Shown: piece by piece, positions 16,442 through 58,106 of the stretch
How the letters are laid out: every line of letters begins with the position of its first letter
How positions within the stretch are numbered: the stretch's first letter is position 1
Source: Asterias rubens
Taxonomy: Eukaryota
Assembly: GCF_902459465.1 (NCBI RefSeq)
Contig: NC_047074.1
Location: 9,176,001-9,240,000 of the forward strand
Reading direction: 5' to 3'
DNA length: 64,000 bases
The notes under the pieces: generated by a model
What the model saw: only the letters and a program-made list of their open reading frames with translations
What the model was told of the DNA's origin: nothing
The model's database searches: none
Made by a program: the position numbers and the translations under genes

Positions 16442-19400
16442 CTAGCTGATGACACAGCGTGGCCACTTGTAGCTCACCTCTTCTTCGTCTTTAAAAGTCA
16501 TGAAATAAAATTCAGGTAGAACAAAATTATTTTAATTTTTTTAGCAACAATTAGAGGTTGGTCCTTAAAAAAGTCGGATTGAAAACTTTGCATGGCGGAA
16601 GTATTACTAAAGCCCTTTTTACACTAAAGGAATACCTGGGAAATTCTCTGGAAATATTTAACCCTGCTCAGGGATAGAATTAAAGGCATTAACCCAAGGG
16701 TAACATGTTTTTCATAACACAACACACTGGACCTACATTTATGGCTTTATACATCCCATCCGAAGGACGCAGCAATAATGATTAAGGACTAAAGTGTCAT
16801 GACCGTAACTCAAACCCACAATATGCTGTTGATCAAGCCAGGAACACACTCTCTTCATCATGGTAAGTGCACTGGGTTCTTACGAGCATTAACGCAGCAC
16901 ATGGGACCTACATGTACATGTATGGCTTTACACATCCCATCCGAAGGACGCAGCAATAATGATTAAGGACTAAAGTGTCATGACCGTAACTCAAACCCAC
17001 ACTCTGCTGATCAGAAACACCAGAGCTTGAGTTCGGTGCTCTTATCTGCTCTGCATGTATGAGACATTTTCCTGTAGAGCACCAAGTAACTGTTTACAAG
17101 GTGCTGTGGCACAATATGCGGCACAATATGCTGTTGATCAAGCCAGGAACACACTCTCTTCATCATGGTAAGTGCACTGGGTTCTTATGAGCATTAACGC
17201 AGCACATGGGACCTACATGTATGGCTTTATACATGTACATCCCATCCGAAGGTCGCAGCAATAATGATTAAGGACTAAAGTGTCATGACCAGGACTCAAG
17301 CCTACACTGATACACCAGAGCTCCAGTTTGGTGCTCTTATCTGCTCTGCCACAACACTTGACGAGAGGTACATGTACATGTACACTGACAAGAGGTAAAG
17401 GTATCAGGCATATTTGATCCATGGACAACAGTAGTGCAATAAATATTTGAGCACAACGGCTGCCCTACGTACTTGTTCATATGGTGGTTAAATGTTTGTG
17501 TTCAAGCTATTTTATTAAAGACACTGGACACTACTGGTAATTGTCAAAGACTTGTCTTCGCAGTTGGTGTATCTCAACATATGCTTAAAATAACAAACCT
17601 GTGAAAATTTGAGCTCAATTGATCGTCGCAGTTGTGAAATATTAATGAAATAAAAAGTCGCACCATGGTCACACGAAGTTGTGTGCTTGCAGATGCTTGA
17701 TTACGAGACCTCAAATTCTTAATCTGAGGTCTCAAAATCAAATTCATGGAAAATTACTTCTTTCTCGAAAACTACGTCACTTCAGAGGGAGCCGTTTCTC
17801 ACAATGTTTTATACCATCAACCTCTCCCCATTACTCGTAATCAAGAAAGGTTTTATGAAAATACTTATTTTGAGTAACTACCGATAGTGTCCAGTGCCTT
17901 TTAATCACCATTTTTCTGATTTTTCGATGGGCAAAAATAAATAGGAAAAGTAGGAATAATTTCATGCCTGGGCGAAGAAGGGTTGACACTTACCGACTGG
18001 AGCGGCTGGTGGGAAATGAACTGTGATATTGTCGTCCAGTCTCATTTTCATGGAGAACCCAGAAACGCTCGTGATGCTGGAGTCCGTCTCCACATAGTCA
18101 TCCGCATCATTGTTGGAACGTCTTTTCTTGCCTTTCGGCTTGGTCTCTATATGTGCATGTACGTCTCCTAGGAAATATACAAAAATCATATGATCATTTG
18201 CAAATCTTACAAAGAAAAAGACAAAAAGTCATAGTGTAAAAATCTAGAAATTTAGCTTTCCTTCATGTTCATCCCTGATCGTGCAACAATTTTGCATTAA
18301 AGGGAAGGTGTACACGTTTGGTAATTACTCAAAACAAATATTAAATTAAAAACTGACTTGGTAACGAGCATTGGGGAGCTGTTGGTAGTATACAACATTG
18401 TGGGAAACGACTCCCCCTGAAGTAACATAGTCTTTGAGAAAGAGGTATTTTCTCACTAAAATAATTGAAGACTTCTACCTATGTAGAAGTCTTTTATTTC
18501 TATCTGAAAGCACACATGACACAAATTTGCCAACAAGGGTGTTTTTTCTTTCATCATTTTATCGCAACACCGATGACCAATTGAGCTCAAATTTTCACAG
18601 GCTTGTTATTTTATGTATATGATGGTATACACCAAGTGGGGACACTGGTCTTTGATAATTACCAAACGTGTACCTTCCCATTAATTATTTCCCTTCTCCT
18701 CATTGAATGAACTATTTTGTTTATTCTTGGAAGAATATATAGTTTGGGTAGTTATTCACCCAAACAACGGAATCTGAGAAACAGAAATGATTCTTGCAGA
18801 AGTCGTTTCTCAAATTTGTGAGTGTTTGAGGTCTTTTTGCGACCAGAGATGCAAATGGTATTTCTTTTTTAAATATGACATAATGAAGATTGCCCCAGAG
18901 CCCAAGCTTGACCAACAGCCCTAGCCTAGGTTTGGGCAACTGGTGGAGGTACAGGCTGACTTACTCTCCTGGGGCAAATTACTCTCAGCAGAATCTACTC
19001 GACGATGAAGTTTGGCCTCGCCCTCAACTGACGAATGGCGCAAATTACTATCAGCGGGAGTTACTTGACGATGGAGTTTGGCCTCGTCTTCTACTGAGGA
19101 ATCTGTGCTTGAACAAGATCCCCTCTTCCTTTTCAACAAGGACTCACTGTCAGTTGCTGAAGAATAGATAACACAAAAAAATAAATATACAGATTCTTGC
19201 TAACAAGTCCAGGAACAAATTAACTACTCATTTGTGACACGCTCTGTGAAAATGAGTCACATGTACATGTAGGCAATTTCAAGAATTGAGTTATATGAAT
19301 GGCTGGAAAGAAAACATCAGCAGCAGTAATTTGGTATGTGTCTAAGCTTTGGGGTGTATCGCGTTGCTGAGTTACTCCTGTTTGAAATAAGCCACTACAC

Positions 19401-20352
19401 CATTTTTTGTGAAAAACGAATTACAAGTAAAATGAAATTTTTTAAACTACCATATCGTGCAAAAGGATGCAAATTAGATGACCACAAAATGACCACAAAA
19501 TTGTTGTATTTGAAGCTTTATTGCCTAAAAGTAAGTGTTCTAAAGGTTAACCATGCAACTATGTTTTTTTTTATTTGTTTTTTTATTACATTTTCCACAT
19601 TAAACTGTCCATAACTTAATAATGCATTGGGCGAAATCTGACTCATTTTCACAGAGTGGGTCACATTTTTGCAATGTCTCAGTTCGCTCGACTGTAATAT
19701 TCTAAGAGATGTCTTGAGACTTCCAGAGCAAGTCTCAAGTCCAAGTATCAACATTTTTAGCCCAAGTAATAAGTCAAGTAAAAAAAAAAATTCTCATTGA
19801 TCAACTTCTGCTTGTTTTTCATTCATGCCTACAACGTTCTGCAGTCCTTAGTGGCTGAAACATTTGCACCACTCTTGTCTCAAGTCAAGTTCCCCATCTT
19901 TCAATTCAATTTTCAAGGCCATCTCCATTTGCCATTCAAGTTCCATGTTGTTCAGGTCAAGCCTTAAGTCAAATCCCCAGTCTTTCAGAGCAAGTTTCAA
20001 GTTATCAGGCCCAAAGTATTTTATGTCAAGTAGTTAAATCTGAAGTGTTTCAGAGCAAGTCGAAAGTCAAGTCTCAAGGTCTTTCAAGTCAAGTCTTTTA
20101 GGTCAAGCCTCAATTCAAGTCTGAAGTGTTTCAGAGCAAGTCCCGAGTCAAGTCTAGGTCTTTCAGGTCAAGTCTCACGTCTTTTAGGTCAAGTCTCAAG
20201 TCAAGTCTGAAGTGTTTCAGAGCAAGTCGCAAGGCAAATATCAAGGTCTTTCAAGTCAAGTCTCAAGTCAAATAAGAAGTGTTTTAGAGCAAGTCGCAAG
20301 TCAAGTCTCAAGGTCTTTCACGTCAAGTCCAAAGTCTTTCAGGGCAAGTCTA

Positions 20353-20434
<82 letters not shown>

Positions 20435-23400
20435 TGAAGCATTTATTTAGCGCTCTACGGAGAACAGAGCGCTTTACATGAGACTATGACAACAAAAGAC
20501 AAACAAACAAACTAGGCTGGGTGGGGAAAAAGAAATGTCTTTTGAATAGAGGCTTTTGAATACAGGCCTCTCTCAGACCTGCTGGGAGCTCATTCCATAG
20601 GCGGGGGCAGCTATGGAGAATGAGCTTGTCCCAGCTTTCCGTCTACATGTAGTTCTAGGAACGGAAAGCCGGGTCTGGTCAGCTGATGAGCGGAGACTTG
20701 CCTGTATTCATCAGCAGTATTGGAGTTGTGGGAATGAACAAGTTCAACCAGATATGATGGAGATTGGGTGAGGAGGATTTTGTATACATGAATGAAAAGA
20801 GAGGTCTTGAGACTTCCAGAGCAAGTCTCAAGTCCAAGTATCAACACTTCCAAGCCAAGTATTAGAAACACTGGACACATTTGGTAATTGTCAAAGACCA
20901 ATTTCCTCACTCGGTGTATCTCAACATAATATGCACAAAAAACAAACCTGTGAAAACTTGAACTCAATTGGTCGTCAAAAGTGCGAGATACATGTAATAA
21001 CAGAAGAAAAAACACCCTTGCCACACAAAGTGTGAGCTTTCAGATGCTTTTTATACTTCCAACAGCTCTCCATTGCTCGTTAGTAAGTTGTTATGCTAAA
21101 CATTATTTTGAATAGTTACCAATAGTGTCCAGTGCCTTTAAGTCAAGGACAGATTTTCACAATGGAAATATTTCTCCTTGAGGATTGATTCTGCTATTGA
21201 TGCAATCAAGTGAAAGAAAACTTTACATGTTGAGATTGACGAGTCCGTCTCACTAGCATCTTGGACTTCCAGTTTGGGCTTGTGCTGGTTGCTCTTATTC
21301 TCTGCTTCCTGGAAAGAAAATAAAACTCATCAGAATTCTCGGAGTACTTTAATAATATTATTAATAATAGCCAGTTTATTTTTCTAGCGCTTTTCACATC
21401 CGCAGGGCGTCCCAAAGCGCTTCACATTATTACCCCTGGTCACTGGGCCTTGATTTACTCCTTAAACCACCATCTCAGCTCCCTGGTGGGGAATATGCAG
21501 CCTGTGCAACATTAATATGCGCTACTCGGCTAAATCAATCACAAGAACCATCTCTGCCCTCACAGGTACCCATTTACTCCTGGGTGGAGAGAAGCAATTA
21601 TAGTTTAAGTGTCTTGCTCAGGGACACAAGTGTAACGACCAGGATTCAAACCCACACTCTGCTGAACAGAAGCACCACAGCTTGAGTTCGGTGCTCTTAT
21701 CCACTCGGTCACGACACCCTATACTTTACTACACTCTTTACTGAAGACAGCAAACAAAGTAACTCGGCTGTTGTAAAAGCACCTATAATTTTAAACTCGT
21801 TACTCGTATTCTGAAAACGAAAATACCAGGAGACGGAAAAATTTTTATTACGGTGATTTTTACACCTCGTTTGTTATAATCGGTCAAATATTGTTGTCGC
21901 AGTAAGTGCTTACAGATGAAAGTGCCAATTTTCATTGTTGCAGTAACTCCTATTGACAAGAACCGCTTTTGAAACTTCCCGCTATTAACTTCACGCTGAA
22001 TCAGAGGAGAGACGATCATGTCAATAGGAGTTCCTGCAACAATGGAAATGGGCACTTTTCAACTGTAAGCACATACCGCGACAACAACACTCGACCAATT
22101 TTCACAAACAATGTGTCAAAATCACCGTGAATAAATTGTCCGTCTCATGGTATTTTCATTTACAATTTTTAGTAACAATTTTAAAATTATAGGTGCTTGT
22201 ACAACAGCTGAGTTACTTTTTTGCTGTCTGCACATTATAATGATTTACTACACCACCAAAGTTCTTCAAGTCCGCTTTGAGGTGACCGTGACCCAGGCTT
22301 TCATTACATTTTATTGATTCTAGTTGTGAATCCAAGGACTCTCAGAGAAGTGAACGTCATCACTGTACTAGCCAAGAACCCACTGAAGAAAACACACGGA
22401 AGAAAGGTTCAGTCTTAGATGTTGTAGGAATACCAAAGAGAATTATTCCCTGGGAAACCCATCTAGTTAGGTAGAGACTAAAAACTCAATCCACATAGTG
22501 CCCCTGTAGTGATTTTAATCAGGGCGGAAGGCGAGGGAAGATACCACCACGCCGACGCCTTAGTCATTTAGCTTTTAAGCCATTGGACAATTTCGGTAAA
22601 CATATTGTCCAAAGGCCCACACTTCTTGTATCACAACTTATATATAAAATAACAATCCTGTGAAAATTTAGGCTCAATCGGTCATCGGAGCCGGGAGAAA
22701 ATAACGGGAAAACCCACCCTTGTTTCCGCACGTTACACCGTGTCATGACATGTGTTTAAAAAAAATCTGTAATTCTTGATGTCGAGAATTGATAATTGTT
22801 TTAATGTTCTCTCAAAAAGTAAAGCATTTCAAGGAATAACATTTCAAGAGAAGTCTTTCACCATAACCTTCTGTAAACCCTGTAAGTTATTTGTAAATCT
22901 GTGAACCTTTTTTTTTTCTTTTTCCGAAAGTGTATAATGGCTCTAATCAACCTTATATTTTAAGATGTTTTTTAATTTTGTATTTTTTTTGTATTCCATA
23001 TGCAACAAAGATAATACACAGACAACAAAACACAGACTTAGCTACCCCCCCCCCCAAAAAAAGTAAAGATATTTATTTGATCTTACCCTGAAGCGTCGCT
23101 TGTAAGCCGACAGAGTCGTCGACTTCCCGAGTTTTGTCAGCAAGAACTCTAGCTTGTTCTTGAGTCTCGGCCAATCGATGCTGTGAGCCATCCCTTTCCT
23201 CCAGAGCTCCTCCTCCATCGTCAGTGCCTCGTCCAGGTACTTCCGGGCCTCCTTGTAGTTCTTGTTGACGAGGTTGAGCGAGCCGACGAAGTAGACGCTG
23301 CGAGCGGTCAGCGGGTGTACCTCAAGGAGACGTTTACGGCCCTCCATGGCCTGTCTGGCGATGGGGATTGCATCATCATAGCTGTTGGTTATAAATTAGT

Positions 23401-25987
23401 GATTTACTCAACATACTTGTAAAACAAACTCTAGGTGTTCGGATGTGTGAAAGGGGTCGTTTCACAAGTACACTTTACTAGTCACAATAAAAAAAGTTCC
23501 AATCAAAGCAAGCAATCGCTTTGGCCTACATGGTCACCAACACACCCCGTTTTGTGAAGTACGTAAAGCCCTTTCATATGATGTATAGATTGTCAAAATA
23601 GCTTTTGTGGTTGAAGAAATAGAAACTGATGAATAATGACGACTGGAGAAGAGACTATCTAACCAGAAGGGAAATGTTTGTTGAAAACGCCTTGAAAACA
23701 GGCTTAAGCAGAGCTATTTATAGAAAAATACTAGATTACATGTCTGTAACATCATTTTTTTGTGTCAATGTAGTATAGCTAATTATATTTAATAACATTC
23801 ATTTTGGTTTTACCCTTGCGCCGATGTATGTTATGAAAAAAATCAGACAATACTCTGGTGAGATTTGAACCCACGAAACTGTGTCTTTTTAGGGCAATGT
23901 CATACCAACAAGACCACCCAGATTGAAAGAAACACCCCCCCCCCCGAAAAAATATAATAAATAAAATAAAATAAAATAAAAAATAATGGTACTAATAATA
24001 AAAAAAACCTGTAGCTGAAACTTTTGAAGCTATTTGCTTACTTTCCCATCTCGTAGTAGCTCATAGCAATATTCTTGAGGGAAGTAAACATTTTGTCCGT
24101 TCCTTCCATTCCGAGCAGTCTCTCCTGTTCCATGGCCTGTTTGTAGTAGTCCACCGCACCTTCATAATCTTCCATATCATGGAGGCAGGTACCTACACGA
24201 AGATAAGAAAAACTAATTATTGAAGGAACTCCAACCTGTATGCCGGCTGGCCAAAGGCTACAGAAAAGATCTGTGAAGGGCGCCTCAAGCTTGCTGGGCA
24301 CTGTGTCTGCCACTCGGAGATTGACACTTGCCCAACCATCCTCTGGGAGCCCACACAAGGCAAGGCTTCTCATGGGAGAAGATGTCTCTCCTTTGCAGAC
24401 ATCCTGAAAAGAGACACCGGCTTAACCAGCGCTGAGGAACTACATTACGCTCCTGCATGCTGGATTTTTGGCTTGAATATCAGAGACACTTTTCAACTAG
24501 AATTTTCTGCGAAACAGCTTTATAAAATTGGGCCTGTATAGAACATAAAGTCATTCATGTAATGATGTACACGTAGGTATGTTTTTTAAATACATACAAA
24601 AGGAACCCAGTTATAGTTACAGCAAAGAGAAGGGGGTTTGCCCTGGTGTTTCTGGCATGGTCTGGCAGCATGGGTCACCTTGCAAAGGGGTGGTTTCTCA
24701 AACTGTTTACTGGACCAAAAAACATTGTGCTAGACAAGAACCAAAATGAGATAGAAACTTCTTGAGCCCTGACAGCATGCATTTTAACTGTTTTCATTTG
24801 GATACATAAAGACGGACACTATTGGTAATTGTCAAAGACCAGTCGTCTCCCTTGGTGTATCTCAACATATATGCACAAAATAACTAACCTGTGAAAATTG
24901 GAGCTCAATTGGTCGAAGTTGCGAGATATCAATGAAAGAAAAAACACCCTTGTCACATGAAGATGTGTGTTTTTTTTACTGAGAAATTACTTCTTTCTCA
25001 AAAACTACCTTGCTTCAGAGAGAGCTGCTTCTCACAATGTTTTATACTATCAACAGCTGTTGAGATACACCAAGTGAGACGACTGGTCTTTGACAATTAC
25101 CAAAGGTGTCCAGTGTCTTTAAAAATGTATCTTGTAATTACTTCTTACCTAAATTCATGAGAAATGTAGGTACTTCTAAATGTTGTCCATGAGCCCCCGT
25201 CTTCCTGCGACAAATAGCTAGCGCTTTCCGGTAACAATCTTTCCCTCTCTCCTTCTCGCTTCTGATGAACGCCGGAGCGAGCCCGGGATCGATCATCGCT
25301 TTGTCTTGGTAGGCTCCACCAAGAGAGTTGTATGCCCGGGCGGTCAAGAGGTCGTCTTCTTTCAGGTGAGCCCGACGGATGGCCAGACATCTTTCGAGCT
25401 GCGGGATGGCGTCCGCCCATTTTCTGTTTCGAAGGTAGATGTCTCCGCGGAAGTGATAGCAGGTGGCGAGGCCGAGTTGTACGCCGATTGTCGTTGTATC
25501 CAGCTTTTTCAATTCGTCTTCAGCTTCTTGAATCATAGGCAGGAGGACTTCGACTGTGTGGCCAAGGTCCATCAGTTGGTACACCTGTACAAATCAATCA
25601 ATCAAGCATAGGCCTACATAATTATTTACAAAGCGCCTTATAAATCGAAGGTTTGCTCAAAGGCGCTAAGGCACAGAAGAGATCAAACAATTTTTAGCTG
25701 TGTTGAGGGATGTTGTGTCCATGGGGTGGACTTCAAAAGAGTCCCAAGATGATACTCCAAAGTTAGGACTATCTTTGTTAAATCAAACACTGTAGACTTG
25801 CAAGTTTAATCTAGTTTGGTTCTATATCATGCATATAGAAAAAGTGATGTGGCATGTTCTTGTCAAAACAATCTATGGTGAGCAGGAGCTATTTGATCAA
25901 CATTAGTTGTCTCTGTCCAGCACTCAGTGCAGCATGTCCATAATGTAATTCGGGGCTTGTTCATGAAAGGCCTTGAACATGAGAATG

Positions 25988-26027
<40 letters not shown>

Positions 26028-29000
26028 AAACTTATAAAGCGCACAAACCTAAGTTGAGAGAAATCTAGAACATGTGGTATAGAATACAATATTACAAATG
26101 CAATATTTAATGATGACCTTGAAGTTGATCCTTTGTTGGATTGGGAACCAGTGTACATGTAGTTTGATGAGTTCTGGGGTGATAGGGTCCAACTTGTGTT
26201 TATATCTACTTGCGTTTATATCTAAATACATATAGGATTGAAATTTTCAAAGGGTTAAAAAAAAAAAAAACGATTACTAAATTTTCACAGGTTTGTTATT
26301 TTTTATATCAGTTGTGATACACGAAGTGCAGCCCTTTGGACAATACTGCTTACCGAAAGTCTCCAATGGCTTTAAACAAAAACTGCTTCATACCTCATGA
26401 CATTTGCTCTCGGCATAAACCAGCATCTGGCCATGCTCCTTAGCCGACAGGGCTCTCTCATGGTAGAATTTGAGACGGTCCTTGGTGAAAAACAGCATCT
26501 CCACGATGAGATACAGCCAATAGATCGCGTCTGGTACATGAAACTCTTTGGAAGTCTTCATTATGTTCAGAGCCTGCAAAAGTGTAAAGGATAGGTACAT
26601 GTAGATAATTCTTGAAGTTTCATTCCAATCATAAAATAAGGGAATCAATGTGTAGTGAAGAGGTCTTCAAATGGTTTAAACCCAACGAGGCCTGGTTCTT
26701 GATCATTTTACCGTAAAATAAATGCAAAAAATTAAAATTGTTCAATCATTTCTTTCAACACAACACCCCTCCAGCTATGAAATGGTAAGGCCCTCGGGTG
26801 AACAATTCCTTATATGGGAATGCTGTGCGCGTTATGCGTGTCGCGTGACGTGGCACAACTGTTTTAGCCGTTGCTCTTGAAACTGTCTGCGGTTAATTTA
26901 CATGAGCCTTGTGAAAATGTCATCAAGTCCAGTTGCGAGGTTTCAGCAAAAAATTGTGCATTTTCACATCATGTTTTTTTTGTGTGGCATGCAAGTACAT
27001 GAAGTAAGAAATGATGATCTGCTCTAGTCTTCCTTTTCCCATGACTTCATTTTTTTCTCCTGAGTATTGGTACTGGTAAGAAATTTAGGTGAGCTTTTCA
27101 GAAACTACATAAAAACAATAAATTGCTATTTATTTTTAACTTGCCTCTTGCTGGATGCTCTTGTAGTGCAATTGTTTATTTCGTGCTTCTGTTTATGTTC
27201 TTTTAAAATATTAAATGAATAGTAGCACTTAACAGAGTTTATAAGCAAGAGGTGTGTTATGCCTCCCTAGTGGAAAGTATTTTTGTATTTTAGTCTTTGA
27301 ATATCTTGTATTTTGTACTTGTACTTAAATAAATATTTTTATATCCTAATGTTTTTCTGTAATTTTAAAAAATAGTATATATATTTTCTTATGCTCTGTA
27401 ATTTTAAATGCAATTCAGCCTCTGGCTGCCAAGTTTGGATGTTTTTAAATAAACCAATAATAATAATAATCTAGTGGCTTCTTATCATAGCGCTTAAATT
27501 CGTCACTCAGTGATCCTCATGGTGCTCCAACATTCAGTATTACATGTACATGTATAACAACAAATTTGCTTTTACTTATCACTGATAGCAGGCATGAAAC
27601 TGTAACTTGGAGGAGATGACAAACTCCAATGGCCTTGTTCAAAGTTTGTTCAAGTTTGAATGGCTCAAATGAGAATACAAAAAGAGGAATTCAGCTTATC
27701 AAAGGAAAAGTTGCATACATGTGATAGTAATTAAAACAAGCATATCTGACAAACCTCAGAATAACTCTCCTCACCTTTATGTAGTTGGCGGAGTCTTCCT
27801 GAAGGTTTCCTAGTGCTGCCACTGCTCTGCTCTGCAGCAACTTGGCGAGCTTCTTCATCCTCTTACCGTAGTAGTCCACAAAGAGCATCTCGGCTTCATT
27901 GAAGAGGGTTTCCATCTCGCCCTCGGTCTCTTGGACGAACTGCTGGACGAACGAGCGCAGCAAGAGATGCAGGCTGTAGCGTGTGCTGTCCTCCTTGGAT
28001 TGCGACCACCTGGAGTCCGTCTCCTGCTTGCTGTCCAGGAGGCTGCGATACTTGAGAGCCTGCAACTCCAGTTGTAGCTCCACCTGCTGCTTACGTCTGT
28101 AGCCAAGAATCACACGGGCAACCTTCAGGGTGAACGTTCCTGGAATCACGGCCAGCTTGATCAGATTGCGTCGTTTCACAGCCGGCAGATTCTGAATGGT
28201 GTTCTTGAGGCAGGGGCCGATCTGGTCGCTCTGCGACAGCCCGAAGTGAGAGAGGGCCTTGGTGATGTTGAGGCCTTGCTCCCTGTCGCCTGAAGCTGGT
28301 GAAATGTACCGGAGGAGGTCCTTAGGTTTGACTGTCTGGTCTTGGAGGCGGCTGGCGACTACCTTGAGAGCAAGGGGAATCTTGCTGCAGAGGCGTACAA
28401 ATGCTTCTGCATCGTCATCCACTGCAATGTTAATAAAATAAACAAACTAAATGTACATCATCAGCAGAAGCAATCAAAGTAATGCCATCAAGCATAAGGA
28501 GTAATTTTTCAGAGAATAAAACTGAAAACAGTTGAGTCTAGAGCACCGGATTCAAACTCTGTTGTTTCTGATCAGTAGAGTGTGAGTTCGAGTCCCGGTC
28601 GTGACATCTGTGTGCTTCACAAAGTAAGACATTTAACCATGATGCTCTGTCCTTCGGATGGGACGTAAAGCCGTTGCGCCACAGCACCTTGTTAACACCA
28701 TTACAAGGTGCTATACATAAAAGAAGCAGGCCCCATCATTCAAACAGAGTCCCACACCTTGCAGGAAAATATTGTATGTTGAAGCGCCTTGAGCTGACGG
28801 ATAATGCACGCTATTTGTGTAAAATAAGAAGCCACTATTATTAATATGTGTAGGCCCTCACCAAGACGTGTCTTTCCAGCGTGGTATCTGACCATCTCCA
28901 CAGCGCTCTCCATGTCCAGTTCGTTCTCCCCGTCCAGTCGCCAGCAATCCATGGAGCCTTTCTTGACTGGTATTTTCTCTACTCCGAACCGTGACGTGAT

Positions 29001-30354
29001 GAGCAGCTTTAGCCGCTTGTTCGCCAGGTTTGTGATATTCTCCAGCATTGAGACGAAGTCTTCGTAGGTTGGGTTCGGGAAGGCTCCCGAGCCTGGATCT
29101 AAAGGGTCATCAACACTGTCTAGGAACAAAACAGCACCACCTAAAAAAGAAAAGAAAGAAAAACATTATTTTCCTAAGGCATATGCACCAGCAGTGTAGG
29201 TCTCAAGACCAGTTTTGCCGGTGTCGGGTCTCGGTGTTGGGTCTCGGTACTGTACCTTGTGGTCTCGATCTTGGTCTTTGGCTCAGTCTGGGATCTTCAG
29301 GTCCCGTTTTCAGTCTTGGTCTCGGACTATCAGGTCCCATTTCTTTGCAGCGCCTCCTCAGATATTCAAAAGAGATTATTACAGGATGTAGTCAACAGTT
29401 TTTCTCAATCACCCCTTTGTCTCGAGCTTGGTCTGGGTCTTTTACCTTCAGGTCTCGGACTATCGGGTCTCAACTACAACGCTGCACTGATATACAATGT
29501 ATACATACACAGACTGGCACAAAGTACTCATCTTCCAGGCTAGCCTAGCTTCTTTGCAGAGCCTCCCCTACAGATATTCTGTACAGGTGTTATCATGGTA
29601 GATTTCTCAACAGTCTTTCTACTCTTTGTATGAACTACATGCCTCTCTATTCAGTGACAAACTATCATTTTGAGTGGAATCAAATTAGGAGCCAAAACAT
29701 AAGGTAGGTTTAGTCTCCCTTTTTCTTACCATGCTCTGCTGGGTCGAAGGACCTCAACTTGCCGTACATGACTTCCGGGTCGTAGGTACGACTTTCCACT
29801 CCAAACGCATGCATGATTGCAAAGAAGATTGCCTCAATGTTCTTCAGCTCCCGCAGATCCACAAAGATCACCTTGTGGAACTGTCGGAGCCTGAGGCATA
29901 CCTCGTTCGCCAGGCGCGTCTTTCCGGTACCCGGCATGCCAGCGACGCAGACCATGTGCACATGGTCGTAGGAAGTGTCCAGGATACCAACAATCTGGTC
30001 CATGATGTCACGGTGTCCGAAGAATGGCCCGTCGACGGAGGAGCATCGTATCTTGAGTTTCCGAGTCACAGCCTGGCGCTCTCTCTCGTACTCGTCCAGC
30101 GACTCAAGAATGTCGATTCGCTTCAGGGTGGTCAAGCACATCCGCAGGAGCTCTGTGTCACCCTCGTGGATTTGGTTCTCTCGTTCGAGTACTTCAAACA
30201 ACTTCAGAGCGTCCCCGTTGATGGTGTCGTAGTTGGGCCCCAGCCGATCACGGAGATACAAGACGGCTTTGTCTACGTCGTCCTGGACCAACATGTCGGA
30301 CATGTAGACAAGGAGCCAGCGAAACCTAGAACTGACTAGTTCGGAAGCGTCCAT
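16442..30354 (-). CDS. DED - NB-ARC-type STAND NTPase - TPR repeat protein with C-terminal CaaX (CVIS), 11 coding exons, ~1035 aa
   Basis: Exons in transcript order: 30354-29730, 29140-28862, 28421-27775, 26573-26394, 25584-25149, 24192-24042, 23381-23087, 21308-21227, 19156-18965, 18167-17994, 16488-16442. All GT-AG and phase-consistent; 3108 nt. N-terminal DED-like region (FRWLLVYMSDML..DALKLFEVLERENQIHEGDTELLRMCLTTLKRIDIL). Walker A GMPGTGKT, Walker B VLFLDSVD, sensor-1 LLITSR, GLPL-like CSKIPLAL, MHD-position LHLLLR. TPR-like helices (LTARAYNSLGGAYQD; LGTCLHDMEDYEGAVDYYKQAM). The last four exons (tail) are less certain than the core. Confidence 0.88.
16715..17350. repeat. Locally duplicated SINE-like segment (catcccatccgaaggacgcagcaataatgattaaggactaaagtgtcatgacc three times); family also at ~21380-21720, 28530-28720, 57290-57530
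   Basis: Direct repeats starting at ~16753, ~16933 and ~17239. Confidence 0.75.
17519..17899. mobile_element. Kolobok-like MITE in intron of STAND gene
   Basis: ttaa|agacactggacactactggtaattg ... gatagtgtccagtgcct; shared interior. Confidence 0.78.
18300..18680. mobile_element. Kolobok-like MITE variant
   Basis: ttaaagggaaggtgtacacgtttggtaatt ... aattaccaaacgtgtaccttccc inverted termini. Confidence 0.72.
19720..20350. repeat. Degenerate (TCAAG)-rich minisatellite; related tracts at ~1085-1195, 11030-11120, 29200-29480
   Basis: Recurrent caagtcaagtct / ttcagagcaagtc / aggtcttt units. Confidence 0.75.
20354..20800 (-). mobile_element. 3' fragment of an L2/CR1-clade LINE with (ATT)n tail
   Basis: Frameshifted minus-strand VYKILLTQSPSYLVELV ... 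FSIAAPRLWNELP, typical of the L2/CR1 ORF2 C-terminus, then aagcgct..agagcgctaaataaat and the (AAT)~26 tract at 20354-20432. Confidence 0.75.
22570..22945. mobile_element. Second TTAA-type MITE family (AGCCATTGGAC... termini); further copy at ~38052-38415
   Basis: ttaagccattggacaatttcggtaaacatattgtccaaagg ... gaaagtgtataatggct; near-identical interior at 38052-38415. Confidence 0.75.
24808..25120. mobile_element. Kolobok-like MITE, internally deleted
   Basis: aaagacggacactattggtaattgtcaaagacc ... ttaccaaaggtgtccagtgtctttaa. Confidence 0.72.
25985..26200 (-). mobile_element. L2/CR1-clade LINE fragment with (ATT)n tail
   Basis: Minus-strand DPITPELIKLHVHWFPIQQRINFKV resembles the HITP.L..LHWLPI..RI.FK motif of L2 ORF2; adjacent (TAA)~12 at ~25988-26024. 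Confidence 0.65.
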
Positions 30355-31307
30355 GGTTGGATACTGATGAGAAGACAATCTACAAAATAAAGAAAACGCG
30401 GAGAAATCAACCCCAATTTAAAGGGAAGTTTGTCTGTAATCACCCTTAAAATTATAATTAATAACGATAATTTTTAGGAAGAACCTATAATAAAAAGTAA
30501 ACTTGCCAGTACACAACCATGTGAAAATCTCTTTTGTGGGAGTGTTGGTTATGAAAAGATCTGGTGTGGTATCGACAGTCGAACAGTATACTTGGCTAGT
30601 GTTTAGGACTTCTGATTAGTAGCATCTAGACTGTAGACAGCAGTTTCAAATTGTATAAAGCATTTTGAAAAAACATTTCACTTTTCACAAAAATATAGCG
30701 GTTTTTGTGTCCCTAAATTTATCTAAAGAGCATTACTAATGCAACGCTTTCTAGATAGTGTATGAAATCCTTTTAAGGATTATTCTTCCTGCGAGGACAA
30801 ATTCGCTCTTGATTTTCGTTGATCTAAGGAAAGCAAACATTTTGTTCTTGAAAATATGCCTGAATAGTGAGTCGCCAAAGGAAAAAGGTTGCACAGCTTA
30901 TGTTTTGCTTCTTATGGTTTTGTTGAGTTTTAATATGATGTCACAGTGGCCAGCCACCAACTCAGTCATCACCATGCAGTGAAGAGACGGGCTCCCCACA
31001 CTGTTTTAACACTTGTCACGAAAAACACGATCACTGACACAATCTTTTAATCGTTTCAGCTTGAATTTTACTATGTAATATCGGGCCTACGGCAAACATT
31101 GCCACAATGCATCTTTGCATTGGACGCGACTAGTGTCGTAGTCGCGACTATTTGAATCGTGACTAGTCGAGCAGTAAATTTCACTAGTCGCCCAAGCCTA
31201 GTACCCAGCCCCATCCCATATCCCCACCAGCATCTAGCCACTGAGTCTCAGACAGACTGACCTTGTTTTGTGCGATCCACGGACACGACAGATTACCCAC
31301 CCAGCAT

Positions 31308-55830: not shown

Positions 55831-56129
55831 TAAAGTGGTTGTTGAAGACGTTTCATACTGAAAAGGGTATCGTATATTCTAAGAAATATTATTTATCCCC
55901 GATGCAAACTTCAAATCCGTTGAAACCTTGCGGTACCCTTTGCTGAAACATTCTTACATTGACAGGAAGATTCGGTATATAATAATCATAAACGATACCA
56001 CAGAATGCCTCAAGAATTTTTCTTGAGAAGGGTACATTTTGTGATACTTGAGGACTTGGAAATAACCACGGTTCACTATACTTTACAAGTGCTTAACTAT
56101 GTGTCTTGTTTATTGTATCAAACAGCATA

Positions 56130-58106
56130 ATGCAGGTTCGTGTGGGTGTATACTTGGCCGTTGCCGCCTGGCTTTGCATCCTGGGGACGGGTCAGTCAAC
56201 AGAGTTGTACATGACGACCTCGGGGAGTATCCCAACAAAAGCTCCACCGACAACCCCTGGCAAGCTCCCAACTAAGGTTCCACCGACAATTCCCCCCAAA
56301 CCACCCACAGAGGCTCCCACTGCTCCCCCAAAACCACACACAGAGGCTCCTATGACAACCCACAAACTACTCACTGAGGCCCCACACACGACTCCTAAAC
56401 CACCCACAGAGGCCCCCACTGCTCCCCCAAAACCACACACAGAGGCTCCCACGGCTCCCCAACAACCACCTACTGATGCTCACACGGCTCCCCCAAAACC
56501 ACCCACAGAAGCCCCACCCACCACACCGATCAAACCCCACATTGCTTGGCCCAAAGGAACCTACGCTCTCCCTAAGCCAGTGTCCCTATGCCCGTACAAC
56601 CACTACAACTGGAAGACGGGATACAGGTACCACGACACACAAGACACATTTCCGAACAATCAATGGTCGGATCCCCTGCATCTTCTCGGCCCGTACTATC
56701 ACAATAACATGCAGCAAAACTTCTGCGTAAAGACGGACTACCAGACGTCCGCGCTTGACCCTGAGTGGGAGAAAGGAAACTACTGCATCATGAAGAAAGG
56801 GGAATACTGTCCTAACAAGGGTGAGACCATCCCAATCTTGTGTCGTTGTTTCACTGAAAGCCACGCAAACTTCACACAACATAATAGCAAAGGATATATA
56901 CTCTCAAAAATAAATAAATAATAAAGAAACATTTATAAGCGCCTTATGCAAAGCCTCAAAGCGTTGTACACAAATATAAAATCAGCTGACATCTATTTCA
57001 CCTGACAACTCACACCTGGTATCTTCATGTAAAAATCATTTTACAAACAGTTGACCATACACTCCCTAGTAGGGCTGCTGGCTTCCCAAGACAGATTAAA
57101 ATCTCGACACCCATTATTAAGTTTGATGTCCCAAGTAATTCAATTTAAACGCACCTAATCTGTGAAAATGATGTTGTAAAAAAAAAACAAAAAAAAAACG
57201 CACGTATCTACACAACAAGGTACTCAAGGCGCTGAGTATAAACAAACTTTCAGAGATAAATTTTATTGCCGTGATGAATTCTGAGACCCTATTATTTAGC
57301 ACCTAAGGGTTTTCGAAGGTGCTACGGTGCATACAGCAGCCACAGCCAAGAACACCGGGGAGAACCCCTTCTCTTTTCGATATTAAAGTGCACTGGGTTA
57401 TTTACATGCGTTTACAACACATGGAACCAACGGCTTTACGTCCCAGCGAAGGACGAAGCAATGGCTTCAAAGTGTCTTGCTTAAGGACACAAGTGTCACG
57501 GCTGGGGATTCGAACCCACACTCGATGGACTACGGTGATTATTCAGTGTGTTTCATTTAATGGAAGAAATAAAAGATAAACATTTGAAAACTCAAGTAGA
57601 ATAGTAAACTTTGCATGGTGGAACACGATATGGTAAGATATGCAGTTAAACACAATGTAATCGATTGTCGAGTTGAAACCTATACTGTTCTTGTTTCAGA
57701 ACCACCGCAACTCAAACCTGTCATTAATTGTGTTTCTTTGTTTTATTATCTGATAGGCTTCAACGAAGGCTGGATCAAATGGGACGACCAGAACCTCTTC
57801 AATAAAAACAAACACGGCGGTGTTATGCCAGAGGGCGTCTACGACCACAACACAAAGATCTACTTCTGCTGCAGGGAGGATGGCGACGTGACCACGCCCA
57901 TAGTTCTCCCTTCAGAAGAACCGTTCTTTCTCTTCCGAAAGCACAACACTTGTCAGCGGGTCTTGGGCATGAGGGTACACGAGGAATGGTTCAAGTGGGA
58001 TGGGGAGGACGATTTCATAGACTTCGACAAGTACCGCGAGGGTTCCGTCCCGGATTTGGAGAGCAAAGGGGATAACCATAAAATAATGTACTGTTATTAC
58101 AGCTAA
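56130..58106 (+). CDS. Apextrin-like secreted protein: signal peptide + Pro/Thr tandem-repeat stalk + ApeC, 2 coding exons, 346 aa
   Basis: Exons 56130-56820 and 57757-58106 (phase 1). MQVRVGVYLAVAAWLCILGTGQS, then repeats of the type PPKPPTEAPTA, then ApeC (WPKGTYALP..YFCCREDG..YCYYS). Confidence 0.92.
56225..56535 (+). repeat. Coding tandem repeat (~33-nt / 11-aa unit PPKP[PH]TEAPT[AT]) in the stalk of the third ApeC gene
   Basis: Repeated ccccaaaaccac..acagaggctccc units; about 8-9 degenerate copies. Confidence 0.85.

Follow-up and report, generated by a model that had tools for sequence, protein, structure and literature searches.

A conserved starfish gene encoding a STAND-type switch with a death effector domain, an NB-ARC ATPase, TPRs, and a C-terminal CaaX box

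A gene of the starfish Asterias rubens, intact and transcribed, encodes a 1035-amino-acid STAND-type molecular switch in which a death effector domain (DED) is followed in order by an NB-ARC ATPase, a helical linker, TPRs, a disordered tail of acidic/basic character, and, at the C-terminus, a CaaX box. The gene lies in a 64,000-nucleotide stretch of contig NC_047074.1, referred to here as the window. The best explanation of the protein, drawn by analogy from Apaf-1, CED-4, plant resistosomes, and AfsR and rated at somewhat better than even odds (roughly 55%), is a nucleotide-switched, probably membrane-tethered oligomerization platform that would cluster DEDs and recruit caspase-8-like or FADD-like proteins. 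The protein belongs to an old, conserved DED-NB-ARC-TPR family that has itself never been studied and that has no vertebrate member among the matches whose source organism was looked up.

Gene structure and expression

The gene is on the minus strand (30354..16442), as are all features given below by their positions in the window. Its ATG-to-stop extent is identical to the span of the original prediction (16442-30354). A single open frame of 3108 nt runs through 11 exons without a stop or frameshift, and all introns are GT-AG. Coding exon 1 (29730..30354; amino acids [aa] 1-208), which occurs once in the genome and is 66% identical to aa 1-211 of the Acanthaster protein, carries the start codon, the DED, a linker, and the N-terminal nucleotide-binding domain with the Walker A motif. 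RNA contigs place a 5' untranslated part of this exon at 30355..30381, with an acceptor at 30381/30382; three of them (X1 record 2, X8 record 10, and X9 record 14) map to 29728-30381 and extend further 5', and the transcripts bear an additional 107 to 248 nt of 5' untranslated region upstream of that acceptor. Coding exon 2 (28862..29140; aa 209-301) encodes the Walker B and sensor-1/RNBS-B motifs, exon 3 (27775..28421; aa 302-517) helical domain 1, the winged helix, and the first part of the helical linker, and exon 4 (26394..26573; aa 518-577) the pre-TPR helical region. The TPRs begin with a first block in exon 5 (25149..25584; aa 578-722), continue in exon 6 (24042..24192; aa 723-772; GT-AG; 73% identity to Acanthaster), and end with a capping helix in exon 7 (23087..23381; aa 773-871; 76% identity). 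A Ser/Asp/Glu-rich tail begins in exon 8 (21227..21308; aa 872-898) and continues through exons 9 (18965..19156; aa 899-962) and 10 (17994..18167; aa 963-1020) to exon 11 (16442..16488; aa 1021-1035 and the stop codon), which encodes the protein end YKWPRCVIS.

The exons are dispersed across 14 kb with introns rich in repeats, and when the exons were scanned singly with Pfam, exon 2 had no match at all and exon 3 no NB-ARC match. These features might be expected of a pseudogene, or of two or three neighboring genes (DED, ATPase, and TPR) misread as one. However, spliced RNA contigs of 2.8 to 4.3 kb each, from four runs in four studies, join exons 1 to 5 at the modeled splice sites; the contigs show the exon 1-2 and 2-3 joints, and the 3-4 and 4-5 joints are present in all four runs. 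Because single contigs join exons 1 to 5, the DED, the NB-ARC ATPase, and the first TPRs are on one mRNA. Furthermore, every exon is colinear with Acanthaster XP_022095060 (1003 aa; 63% identity over the whole length), and colinear full-length orthologs of about 1000 aa are known from more than 12 species. The spliced contigs, the open GT-AG model, and the colinearity with Acanthaster refute the artifact, to which we assign practically no probability.

Domains of the encoded protein

The N-terminus is a true DED, a six-helix bundle (aa 11-92; 30079..30324) that was identified with Pfam, AF2, and Foldseek. Its Pfam score of 42.6 bits (E = 7.5e-11) exceeds the cut-off of 35.9, the AF2 model (pLDDT 86.8) has six helices, and the best 50 Foldseek matches in the PDB are all DED structures, which bears out the DED-like N-terminus of the original prediction. 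The DED of FADD superposes on the model with a TM score of 0.89, a root mean square deviation of 1.0 Å, and 30 to 31% identity. An RxDL-type motif, KRIDIL (30106-30123), falls in a conserved column of alignment A2. Only about seven DED loci in the A. rubens genome exceed the cut-off. As candidate DED partners, the genome has a FADD-like locus with a DED and a Death domain (C21, 7.066-7.069 Mb) and a caspase-8-like locus with two DEDs and a caspase domain (C6, 8.960-8.978 Mb), and we infer that the starfish protein signals to caspase-8/FADD.

The NB-ARC ATPase comprises a nucleotide-binding domain, a helical domain, and a winged helix with an MHD-like His. In the Walker A motif, or P-loop (GMPGTGKT; aa 139-146; 29940-29917), the three glycines and the lysine are invariant among the 15 aligned members of the family. 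Coding exon 2 holds the Walker B motif VLFLDSVDD (aa 212-220; 29132-29106) and the sensor-1/RNBS-B motif LLITSR (aa 254-259; 29006-28989), and coding exon 3 holds the GLPLAL-type motif KIPLAL in helical domain 1 (aa 315-320; 28383-28366) and, in the winged helix, the MHD-like motif YSLHLLLRSF (27949-27978) with its invariant His. Thus, the four motifs initially read as a STAND set (GMPGTGKT, VLFLDSVD, LLITSR, and KIPLAL) are all found in one minus-strand gene. Within the family, little or no variation is seen in the Walker A and B motifs, the sensor-1 Arg, the G-x-P of GLPLAL, or the MHD-like His. The Asp of the MHD motif is replaced by Leu in the starfish protein, a difference that could alter nucleotide sensing.

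The NTPase is of the NB-ARC type, not the NACHT type. The Pfam NB-ARC model is borderline on the P-loop exon alone (23.6 versus a cut-off of 23.5), scores 27 to 42 bits on orthologs, covering up to positions 4-246 of its 248, and is slightly below the cut-off in two more distant relatives. When a family profile was compared with solved proteins, NRC4 matched at 6.8e-21 over positions 3-347 of 402, an alignment that takes in the GLPLAL and MHD-like motifs, AfsR at 2.8e-18, and Apaf-1 at 1.4e-11; NACHT proteins were absent among the best 60 matches. The nearest solved relatives of the NTPase are plant NRC4/NRC2, AfsR, and Apaf-1. An AF2 model of the NOD of the Acanthaster ortholog, rather than of the starfish protein (pLDDT 84.6), gave its best superpositions with proteins in the closed state, namely Apaf-1 bound to ADP and NRC2 at rest (TM 0.62 to 0.64), versus TM scores of 0.40 to 0.45 for active forms. 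Its top matches among Swiss-Prot models were Rv0894, AfsR, Apaf-1, and plant R proteins. The expected grouping of the NTPase with NB-ARC rather than NACHT proteins therefore stands, but kinship with immune proteins does not follow: the NTPase clade is uninformative on immunity because, beyond the animal family, the proteins closest to it are bacterial signaling ATPases of the AfsR-like NB-ARC-TPR type.

The TPR superstructure and the order DED, NB-ARC, TPR had been predicted correctly. Exon 5 matches Pfam TPR_10 (38.9 bits) and TPR_12 (39.1 bits), both exceeding their cut-offs, exon 6 matches TPR_1 (30.4 bits), and exon 7 matches TPR_16 at 21.2 bits, under its cut-off of 32.7. Identity of the TPR region versus that of the nucleotide-binding domain was 73% versus 70% with Acanthaster, 44% versus 54% with S. 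purpuratus, and 34% versus 29% with amphioxus. Judged by these alignments, the TPR region is about as conserved as the ATPase, a pattern more in keeping with a conserved trigger than with a pathogen receptor under rapid evolution.

The C-terminal end after the TPRs is a disordered tail closing in CVIS. Exon 9 encodes a basic cluster, KRKRG (19119-19133), together with an internal duplication of 22 aa (18996-19100), exon 10 a second basic cluster, KPKGKKRR (18118-18141), and exon 11 the CaaX box CVIS (16445-16456) at the protein C-terminus. Cys occupies position -4 in 15 of 25 full-length relatives, versus a Cys background of 1.6%, and CaaX ends occur in both family clades (CIIC, CRVM, CHVM, CSLA, CSPS, CQLQ, CTVQ, CLLS, and CNIL). 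The other 10 relatives lack a CaaX box and end in basic clusters or otherwise. CVIS is probably a lipid-anchor signal, with farnesylation of Cys1032 tethering the protein to membranes. The basic clusters of the tail could be nuclear-localization rather than membrane signals.

A lipid anchor together with TPRs is reminiscent of NPHP3, and DEDs can also inhibit or play non-death roles, as in cFLIP and PEA-15. The protein might then be a non-death scaffold or a negative regulator, its DED sequestering FADD or caspase-8 in the manner of cFLIP or PEA-15 or acting outside apoptosis, and its lipid-anchored ATPase-TPR part providing, like nephrocystin-3, a scaffold at membranes or cilia. The Foldseek neighbors of the DED include PEA-15, cFLIP, and viral FLIP, and NCBI named one ortholog 'nephrocystin-3-like', the orthologs otherwise being annotated 'uncharacterized'. 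However, the Pfam matches to NPHP3 models are weak: TPR_NPHP3 scores at most 35 bits versus a cut-off of 100, and NPHP3_N scores 16.3 bits on the starfish gene versus a cut-off of 24.8, which it barely reaches in two distant relatives (25.2 and 25.6 bits). NPHP3 is absent among the best 30 Swiss-Prot structural matches, and the motifs for catalysis and switching in an active NB-ARC are all conserved, which a passive scaffold would not require. We consider such a role improbable.

An ancient orthogroup

A 1:1 ortholog is present in all five echinoderm classes, and the branching order of the gene tree agrees with that of the species for the asteroids, the ophiuroid, the echinoids, the holothuroids, the crinoids, and the hemichordates. 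Relatives also occur in hemichordates, amphioxus, and some lophotrochozoans, and the tree divides the family into two clades. Only two distant tandem paralogs were found in the A. rubens genome, and lineage-specific expansion of the family was not found. The family is an ancient, slowly evolving orthogroup. With its slow 1:1 evolution, the gene is more like an Apaf-1-type adaptor of a conserved signal than like an expanded, diversifying immune receptor.

These observations bear on the possibility that the protein is an NLR-like innate immune sensor, in which the TPRs would recognize either a molecule from a microbe or a host protein modified by a pathogen, and the DED would pass the signal to a caspase-8/FADD-type defense pathway. 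STAND proteins with TPR sensors serve defense in bacteria, fungi, and plants, the top solved matches of the NOD are plant immune NLRs, and the window contains two genes with apextrin C domains (ApeC) at a distance of 20 to 27 kb. NOD1 and NOD2 are conserved sensors without expansion, and single-copy conservation does not exclude a pathogen-sensing role. However, the single ortholog across echinoderm classes, the scarcity of paralogs, the conservation of the TPRs, and the closeness to AfsR-like regulators rather than to defense proteins all argue against it, and we regard pathogen sensing as unlikely, though the strongest of the alternatives. The biochemical switch is common to the pathogen sensor and the DED-clustering platform; the trigger and the biological role differ.

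Proposed mechanism

At rest, the DED-clustering platform would be a closed, ADP-bound monomer, probably farnesylated at Cys1032 and held at the membrane. Once a conserved ligand or partner bound the TPR region, the NB-ARC would be released, and nucleotide exchange would lead to oligomerization into a ring. The clustered DEDs could then act like the FADD DED layer of the DISC and nucleate DED filaments of a caspase-8-like protease, directly or via FADD, with caspase activation leading to apoptosis or inflammatory signaling. From the slow evolution of a single ortholog, TPRs included, a conserved endogenous or danger trigger is expected rather than variable pathogen molecules.

Comparison with known systems

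Since 2007, surveys (Zmasek 2007, PMC2246300; Acropora review, PMC4083563; Trichoplax, PMC6321704) have catalogued NB-ARC proteins with shuffled death-fold and TPR or WD40 domains in sea urchin, amphioxus, cnidarians, and placozoans. The N-termini listed include the death domain, DED, TIR, and double CARD, with TPRs replacing WD40, and DED plus NB-ARC is reported there for cnidarians. Thus, the fungal/bacterial-style layout in an animal to which the original prediction pointed is not new because the class had already been described (Zmasek 2007). Strictly speaking, the starfish protein is not an NLR either, as it lacks both NACHT and LRR. The starfish gene is a member of this invertebrate class; its family is an ancient, slow orthogroup, whereas the surveys emphasize lineage-specific expansion (PMC2246300, PMC4083563, PMC6321704). 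No paper found in the literature search used the term 'DED-NB-ARC' or described a CaaX-ended NB-ARC protein, and what is new here is that the CaaX end is conserved and the orthogroup ancient.

Like Apaf-1, CED-4, and Dark (CARD-NB-ARC-WD40), the starfish protein places an animal NB-ARC STAND ATPase between an N-terminal death fold and a C-terminal repeat sensor. Closed ADP-bound Apaf-1 is the best fit of the NOD model (TM 0.63 to 0.64), and Apaf-1 is also a conserved low-copy gene; by sequence it is more remote than the plant NRCs and AfsR. The starfish protein has a DED in place of CARD, so a caspase-8-type rather than a caspase-9-type partner is expected, and TPRs in place of WD40, and thus no cytochrome-c-type propeller. 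It differs further in its disordered tail with a C-terminal CaaX box and in a Walker B of the LDxxDD/LDNAD type.

In the DISC (FADD/caspase-8/cFLIP), a death receptor clusters FADD through the death domain. The starfish DED is closest to that of FADD, with an RxDL-type motif, and FADD-like and caspase-8-like genes are also in the genome. However, the starfish DED is fused to its own predicted ATP-driven oligomerization engine and sensor, which would make a receptor or death domain unnecessary.

Outside the animal family, the whole NB-ARC plus TPR module is best matched by bacterial regulators of the AfsR type, at no more than 177 bits after a steep fall from at least 690 bits within the family. 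Rv0894, Rv0890c, and AfsR head the Swiss-Prot structural matches of the NOD model, and an LDNA-type Walker B is common to the bacterial regulators and the starfish family. Their N-termini (SARP/BTAD, HTH, kinase, or cyclase) are DNA-binding or enzymatic effectors, in contrast to the eukaryotic DED of the starfish protein, whose gene is intron-rich and encodes a CaaX tail.

Among solved proteins, the plant CC-NLR helpers (NRC4, NRC2, and ZAR1) score highest against the NOD, NRC4 over NBD-HD1-WHD, and their MHD-region His and GLPL motif align with those of the starfish family. They have LRR rather than TPR sensors and a pore-forming CC N-terminus rather than a DED. The plant helpers act at membranes, as the starfish protein is predicted to; they do so through insertion of an N-terminal helix, whereas the starfish protein would do so through a C-terminal prenyl group.

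Gene structure and expression

A single minus-strand gene fills window positions 30354 to 16442. Its 11 coding exons (exon 1, 30354-29730; exon 2, 29140-28862; exon 3, 28421-27775; exon 4, 26573-26394; exon 5, 25584-25149; exon 6, 24192-24042; exon 7, 23381-23087; exon 8, 21308-21227; exon 9, 19156-18965; exon 10, 18167-17994; and exon 11, 16488-16442; all on the minus strand) form an open frame of 3108 nt that encodes 1035 amino acids. The model was based on open frames, boundary sequence, and tblastn with the best ortholog, and every intron in it has GT-AG ends. The span of the original prediction, 16442-30354, runs exactly from the ATG to the last base of the stop codon in this model. The four motifs that it quoted were also recovered, at amino acids 139-146, 212-220, 254-259, and 315-320.

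RNA contigs from four public runs, representing four studies, were aligned to window positions 24500-30450. Exons 1 to 5 were joined in single spliced contigs of 3422, 2829, and 4272 nt, with a shorter set in the fourth run, and the RNA joints fell on the model splice sites to within the 1 to 3 nt left unresolved by the aligner. The contigs extend 5' past an acceptor at 30381 into an additional untranslated exon. The 4272-nt contig continues for 1867 nt 3' of exon 5, leaving space for exons 6 to 11 (941 nt) and a 3' untranslated region. The RNA evidence covers exons 1 to 5, and the splicing of exons 6 to 11 is based on orthology and GT-AG sites. The possibility of a pseudogene or a mis-joined gene was rejected on the basis of colinearity with orthologs, the open frame, and the spliced RNA contigs, and an artefact is refuted as an explanation. 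The gene encodes an intact, expressed, and strongly conserved protein with a death effector domain (DED), an NB-ARC domain with all of the switch motifs, tetratricopeptide repeats (TPR), and a CaaX end.

Introns 5, 4, and 2 contain abundant repeats (window 24699-25295, 26092-26887, and 28480-28678), at which the RNA-contig word depth was 10^4-10^5 versus 13-62 on the exons and at which many contigs end or join. Related open-frame fragments ('...DDQLSSNFHRFVIL...') were present at approximately 17577-17753, 18434-18622, 20611-21024, 22564-22746, and 24822-24986. The repeats probably represent a family of mobile elements, SINE-like or of another kind. ARAGORN found no tRNA in the gene region, the intron repeats included.

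The apextrin C-terminal domain (Pfam ApeC, 93 to 121 bits) was matched in three plus-strand open frames of the window (50532-50966, 56106-56921, and 57615-58106); two of the matches cover the N-terminal half of the model, and the third covers the C-terminal half. This pattern points to at least two ApeC-type genes located 20 to 27 kb upstream of the DED gene. ApeC proteins are microbe-binding proteins in invertebrates.

Death effector domain and candidate partners

The N-terminus of the protein matched the Pfam DED model PF01335 with 42.6 bits (cut-off, 35.9; E value, 7.5e-11) over model positions 1-82 of 82, and no CARD, PYD, or Death model from Pfam matched it at an E value of 1 or less. AlphaFold2, supplied with a 20-sequence alignment, modeled the domain as a six-helix bundle (pLDDT, 86.8). 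The top 50 matches in a Foldseek search of this model against the PDB were all DEDs, from caspase-8/cFLIP, FADD, MC159, and PEA-15. The FADD DED superimposed on the model with a TM score of 0.89 and an rmsd of 1.0 A at 30 to 31% identity. The RxDL motif is a hallmark of DEDs; its counterpart in helix 6 is KRIDIL, and most of the 20 proteins in the family alignment retain R-x-D-L/I. Thus, the death-fold N-terminus on which the original prediction had staked its reading both scores and folds as a DED by Pfam, AlphaFold2, and Foldseek.

Across the starfish genome (G000; contigs are numbered C, loci L), the Pfam DED model scored above its cut-off at only about seven loci. One is a FADD-like locus (L008, G000:C21:7066354-7069523, minus strand), in which a death domain lies 2.7 kb downstream of the DED. 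Because the DED frame is preceded by a stop codon, the first coding exon of the FADD-like gene starts 5' of the DED exon. The sequence HRPDCM occupies the usual RxDL site of DEDs at this locus. Another is a caspase-8-like locus (G000:C6:8960313-8978412, minus strand) with two DEDs, then caspase exons, and between them death-domain matches at 8975052, 8972759, and 8968642, all on one strand. These exons belong either to a single gene, whose DED-DED-DD-caspase layout would be unusual, or to two neighboring genes.

The ATPase is an NB-ARC domain

The ATPase core (nucleotide-binding domain, helical domain, and winged helix; NOD) has a Walker A motif, GMPGTGKT, and a Walker B motif, VLFLDSVDD, whose columns are invariant in the family. 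The sensor-1/RNBS-B motif LLITSR, the GLPLAL-type motif KIPLAL, and the MHD-type motif YSLHLLLRSF are all present and align to those of NRC4. The T/R, the G-x-P, and the winged-helix His are invariant or nearly so in the family; the Asp of MHD is Leu in the window protein.

Pfam NB-ARC scored 23.6 bits on the P-loop exon 1 alone, a borderline value given the cut-off of 23.5, and gave no match to exons 2 and 3 scanned singly because the introns split the domain, so that a family profile was needed. The orthologs scored 27 to 42 bits against Pfam NB-ARC, over up to positions 4-246 of 248, and two more distant relatives fell slightly below the cut-off. A NOD profile built from the family alignment was searched against all PDB sequences. 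It matched NRC4 at 6.8e-21, aligned from the P-loop via GLPLAL to the MHD-like His, and Apaf-1 at 1.4e-11, with further matches to AfsR, NRC2, MLA13, Sr35, Roq1, and ZAR1. There was no NACHT protein among the top 60 sequence matches.

For the fold of the NOD, the 63%-identical Acanthaster ortholog was modeled with AlphaFold2 in place of the window protein (pLDDT, 84.6). The model matched closed ADP-bound Apaf-1 and resting NRC2 with TM scores of 0.62-0.64 and the isolated NB-ARC domain of NRC1 with 0.63; TM scores with active oligomers were just 0.40-0.45. CED-4 was also among the fold-search matches, and NACHT proteins were absent from the top 50 structural matches. Among Swiss-Prot models, the best structural matches were the mycobacterial Rv0894 and Rv0890c, AfsR, Apaf-1, plant R proteins, and GutR, and the top 30 contained neither NPHP3 nor NACHT NLRs.

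Several other identities were considered. Pfam NACHT reached 14.8 bits on exon 1 (cut-off, 26.7) and at most 24.3 bits in relatives, also under the cut-off. These scores and the lack of NACHT proteins among the structural neighbors led us to reject a NACHT domain. The choice between NB-ARC and NACHT, for which HMM searches had been proposed, falls to NB-ARC by the Pfam, PDB profile, and fold searches alike. A strict NLR, with NACHT and leucine-rich repeats (LRR), was rejected because there is no NACHT and because exons 5 to 7 and all of the orthologs show TPR families and no LRR. Nephrocystin-3 was rejected because NPHP3_N (16.3 bits versus 24.8) and TPR_NPHP3 (16.5 versus 100) were below their cut-offs on the window gene and no NPHP3 was among the top 30 Swiss-Prot structural matches; in the orthologs, TPR_NPHP3 reached at most 35 bits, and two distant relatives just attained the NPHP3_N cut-off, with 25.2 and 25.6 bits. 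The protein is also not a member of the Apaf-1 family (CARD-NB-ARC-WD40), because it has a DED and TPR instead and only the NB-ARC core is common to both.

TPR region, tail, and CaaX end

Exons 5 to 7 matched the Pfam models TPR_10 (38.9 bits versus a cut-off of 27.5), TPR_12 (39.1 versus 30.1), and TPR_1 (30.4 versus 27.8), and TPR_12 reached 115 bits in the Acanthaster ortholog. Identities for the TPR region and the nucleotide-binding domain, respectively, were 73 and 70% with Acanthaster, 44 and 54% with S. purpuratus, and 34 and 29% with amphioxus. Judged by these identities, conservation of the putative sensor region matches that of the nucleotide-binding domain. In a rival reading, the trigger would be a pathogen, acting through the same switch; such a sensor would differ from the one that we favor in what it detects. 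The evolutionary pattern argues for a conserved trigger, and the strong conservation of the TPR suggests a single ligand that could be found.

Ser, Asp, and Glu abound in the tail (amino acids 881-1031), which is poorly conserved and has two basic clusters. Within this disordered tail, exon 9 (window 18996-19100, minus strand) contains an internal duplication of 22 residues, SSVEDEAKLHRQV... / SSVEGEAKLHRRV..., for which the Acanthaster tail showed no counterpart.

The last four residues, CVIS, fit the CaaX pattern (Cys at -4, two mostly aliphatic residues, and X) and resemble the H-Ras box CVLS, a farnesylation signal. A Cys at -4 is shared by 15 of the 25 full-length relatives and occurs in both clades of the family; the overall Cys background is 1.6%. 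For example, the ends are CIIC in two starfish, CRVM and CHVM in urchins, CSLA and CSPS in sea cucumbers, CQLQ and CTVQ in amphioxus, CLLS and CILS in the clade B proteins of Diadema, and CNIL in a chiton. A Trp a few residues before the CaaX is also retained in several relatives, and many relatives without a CaaX have Lys/Arg clusters at the C-terminus. The window protein is probably prenylated.

Distribution and origin of the family

The best relative, Acanthaster planci XP_022095060, is 63% identical over its full length, with Patiria next, and the tree places the Acanthaster and Patiria proteins together as the sister group of the window protein. The orthologs in an ophiuroid, echinoids, holothuroids, crinoids (as tandem copies), and hemichordates are about 940-1080 amino acids long and share its Pfam content; amphioxus, a chiton, bivalves, a brachiopod, and a nemertean have more distant members of the family. 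All of the relatives are annotated as uncharacterized, 'DED domain-containing', 'nephrocystin-3-like', or 'AfsR-like'. No vertebrate, arthropod, nematode, or cnidarian was among the approximately 27 of 45 exon 1 matches, from 1.84 billion representatives, whose source was checked.

The tree separates two groups. Clade A matches the species tree from asteroids out to hemichordates, and therefore the window gene is a 1:1 ortholog across Echinodermata. Clade B contains a second Diadema gene, a second Antedon gene, the amphioxus and lophotrochozoan members, and one paralog from the starfish genome. The deep nodes, i.e., the split between clades A and B and the placement of the lophotrochozoans, are provisional because the tree came from a quick maximum-likelihood search rooted on three bacterial sequences and has several long branches.

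The starfish genome, searched over 417.6 Mb in 150 contigs, has two tandem paralogs, of which one entered the tree. They lie on the same chromosome as the window gene, 3 Mb off, at G000:C14:12236951-12240571 (L003/L028) and C14:12254951-12258538 (L004/L029). They are 28% identical to exon 3, encode most of the NOD and TPR in one large exon versus six in the window gene, and group with Diadema P0023 and Antedon P0027 in clade B. A short DED-like fragment is located at L028:7261-7341; their DED seems to be intron-split or decayed. The top NB-ARC match of the genome (69 bits; G000:C13:11121351-11121959, minus strand; L014) is in an intron-less open frame of 1592 amino acids, and there were weak NB-ARC matches in several further open frames of about 1000 amino acids on C2 and C23. 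A multi-exon locus at 4.84 Mb on C23 looks like the Apaf-1 ortholog.

In a full-length profile search, with candidates picked by shared words, scores were at least 690 bits inside the animal family and then at most 177 bits outside it. The next matches were bacterial NB-ARC-TPR proteins with SARP/BTAD, HTH, kinase, or cyclase N-termini, and therefore the NB-ARC and TPR form a module of the AfsR type. This agrees with the fungal/bacterial-style layout suggested in the original prediction. The layout as such, the headline of that prediction, is not novel in an animal because invertebrate proteins that combine a death fold with NB-ARC and TPR or WD40 are already documented (PMC2246300, PMC4083563, PMC6321704; see also PMC3879445). 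For the grouping of the NTPase, which had been proposed as a test of an immune role, the nearest non-animal relatives are signaling regulators rather than immune proteins, and that clade is silent on biological role, which is indicated by the effector domain and not by the clade of the NTPase. One rival reading of the biological role is that the protein serves as an inhibitory or non-death scaffold.

Proposed function and significance

Our preferred reading is that the protein is a switch that starts DED signaling. At rest, it would be a closed, ADP-bound monomer, probably prenylated. Binding of a ligand at the TPR would lead to nucleotide exchange and oligomerization, and the clustered DEDs would then recruit caspase-8-like or FADD-like proteins.

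In its boldest form, which we consider doubtful, with a probability of about 0.3, this reading takes the family for an ancestral bilaterian 'DED-apoptosome', in which an NB-ARC-TPR switch, farnesylated and resident in the membrane, would sense a conserved intracellular signal and directly nucleate caspase-8-type DED filaments without a death receptor. Together with the CARD apoptosome and the receptor-driven DISC, this would make three routes to initiator caspases. Vertebrates and ecdysozoans would have lost the switch; echinoderms, hemichordates, amphioxus, and some lophotrochozoans would have retained it.

If the preferred reading holds, a STAND sensor could trigger caspase-8-type signaling from within the cell in most deuterostomes other than vertebrates, and the vertebrate arrangement would then be a reduced one.

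A literature search did not find the term 'DED-NB-ARC' in any paper, a paper tying a CaaX to an NB-ARC protein in a relevant sense, or a description of the ancient orthogroup, its slow evolution, the sensor included, or its recurrent CaaX end. The family would be a clean case for the recruitment of AfsR-type bacterial NB-ARC-TPR modules into animal death-fold signaling. It is also tractable: the gene is single-copy and expressed, and sea urchins and sea stars, whose embryos serve as models, have orthologs.

Of the routes to initiator caspases, two are well understood: CARDs are brought together by Apaf-1 for caspase-9, and the DEDs of FADD are brought together by death receptors for caspase-8. 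The family described here pairs the ATP-driven clustering engine of the Apaf-1 route with the effector domain of the death-receptor route and has, in addition, a probable lipid anchor.
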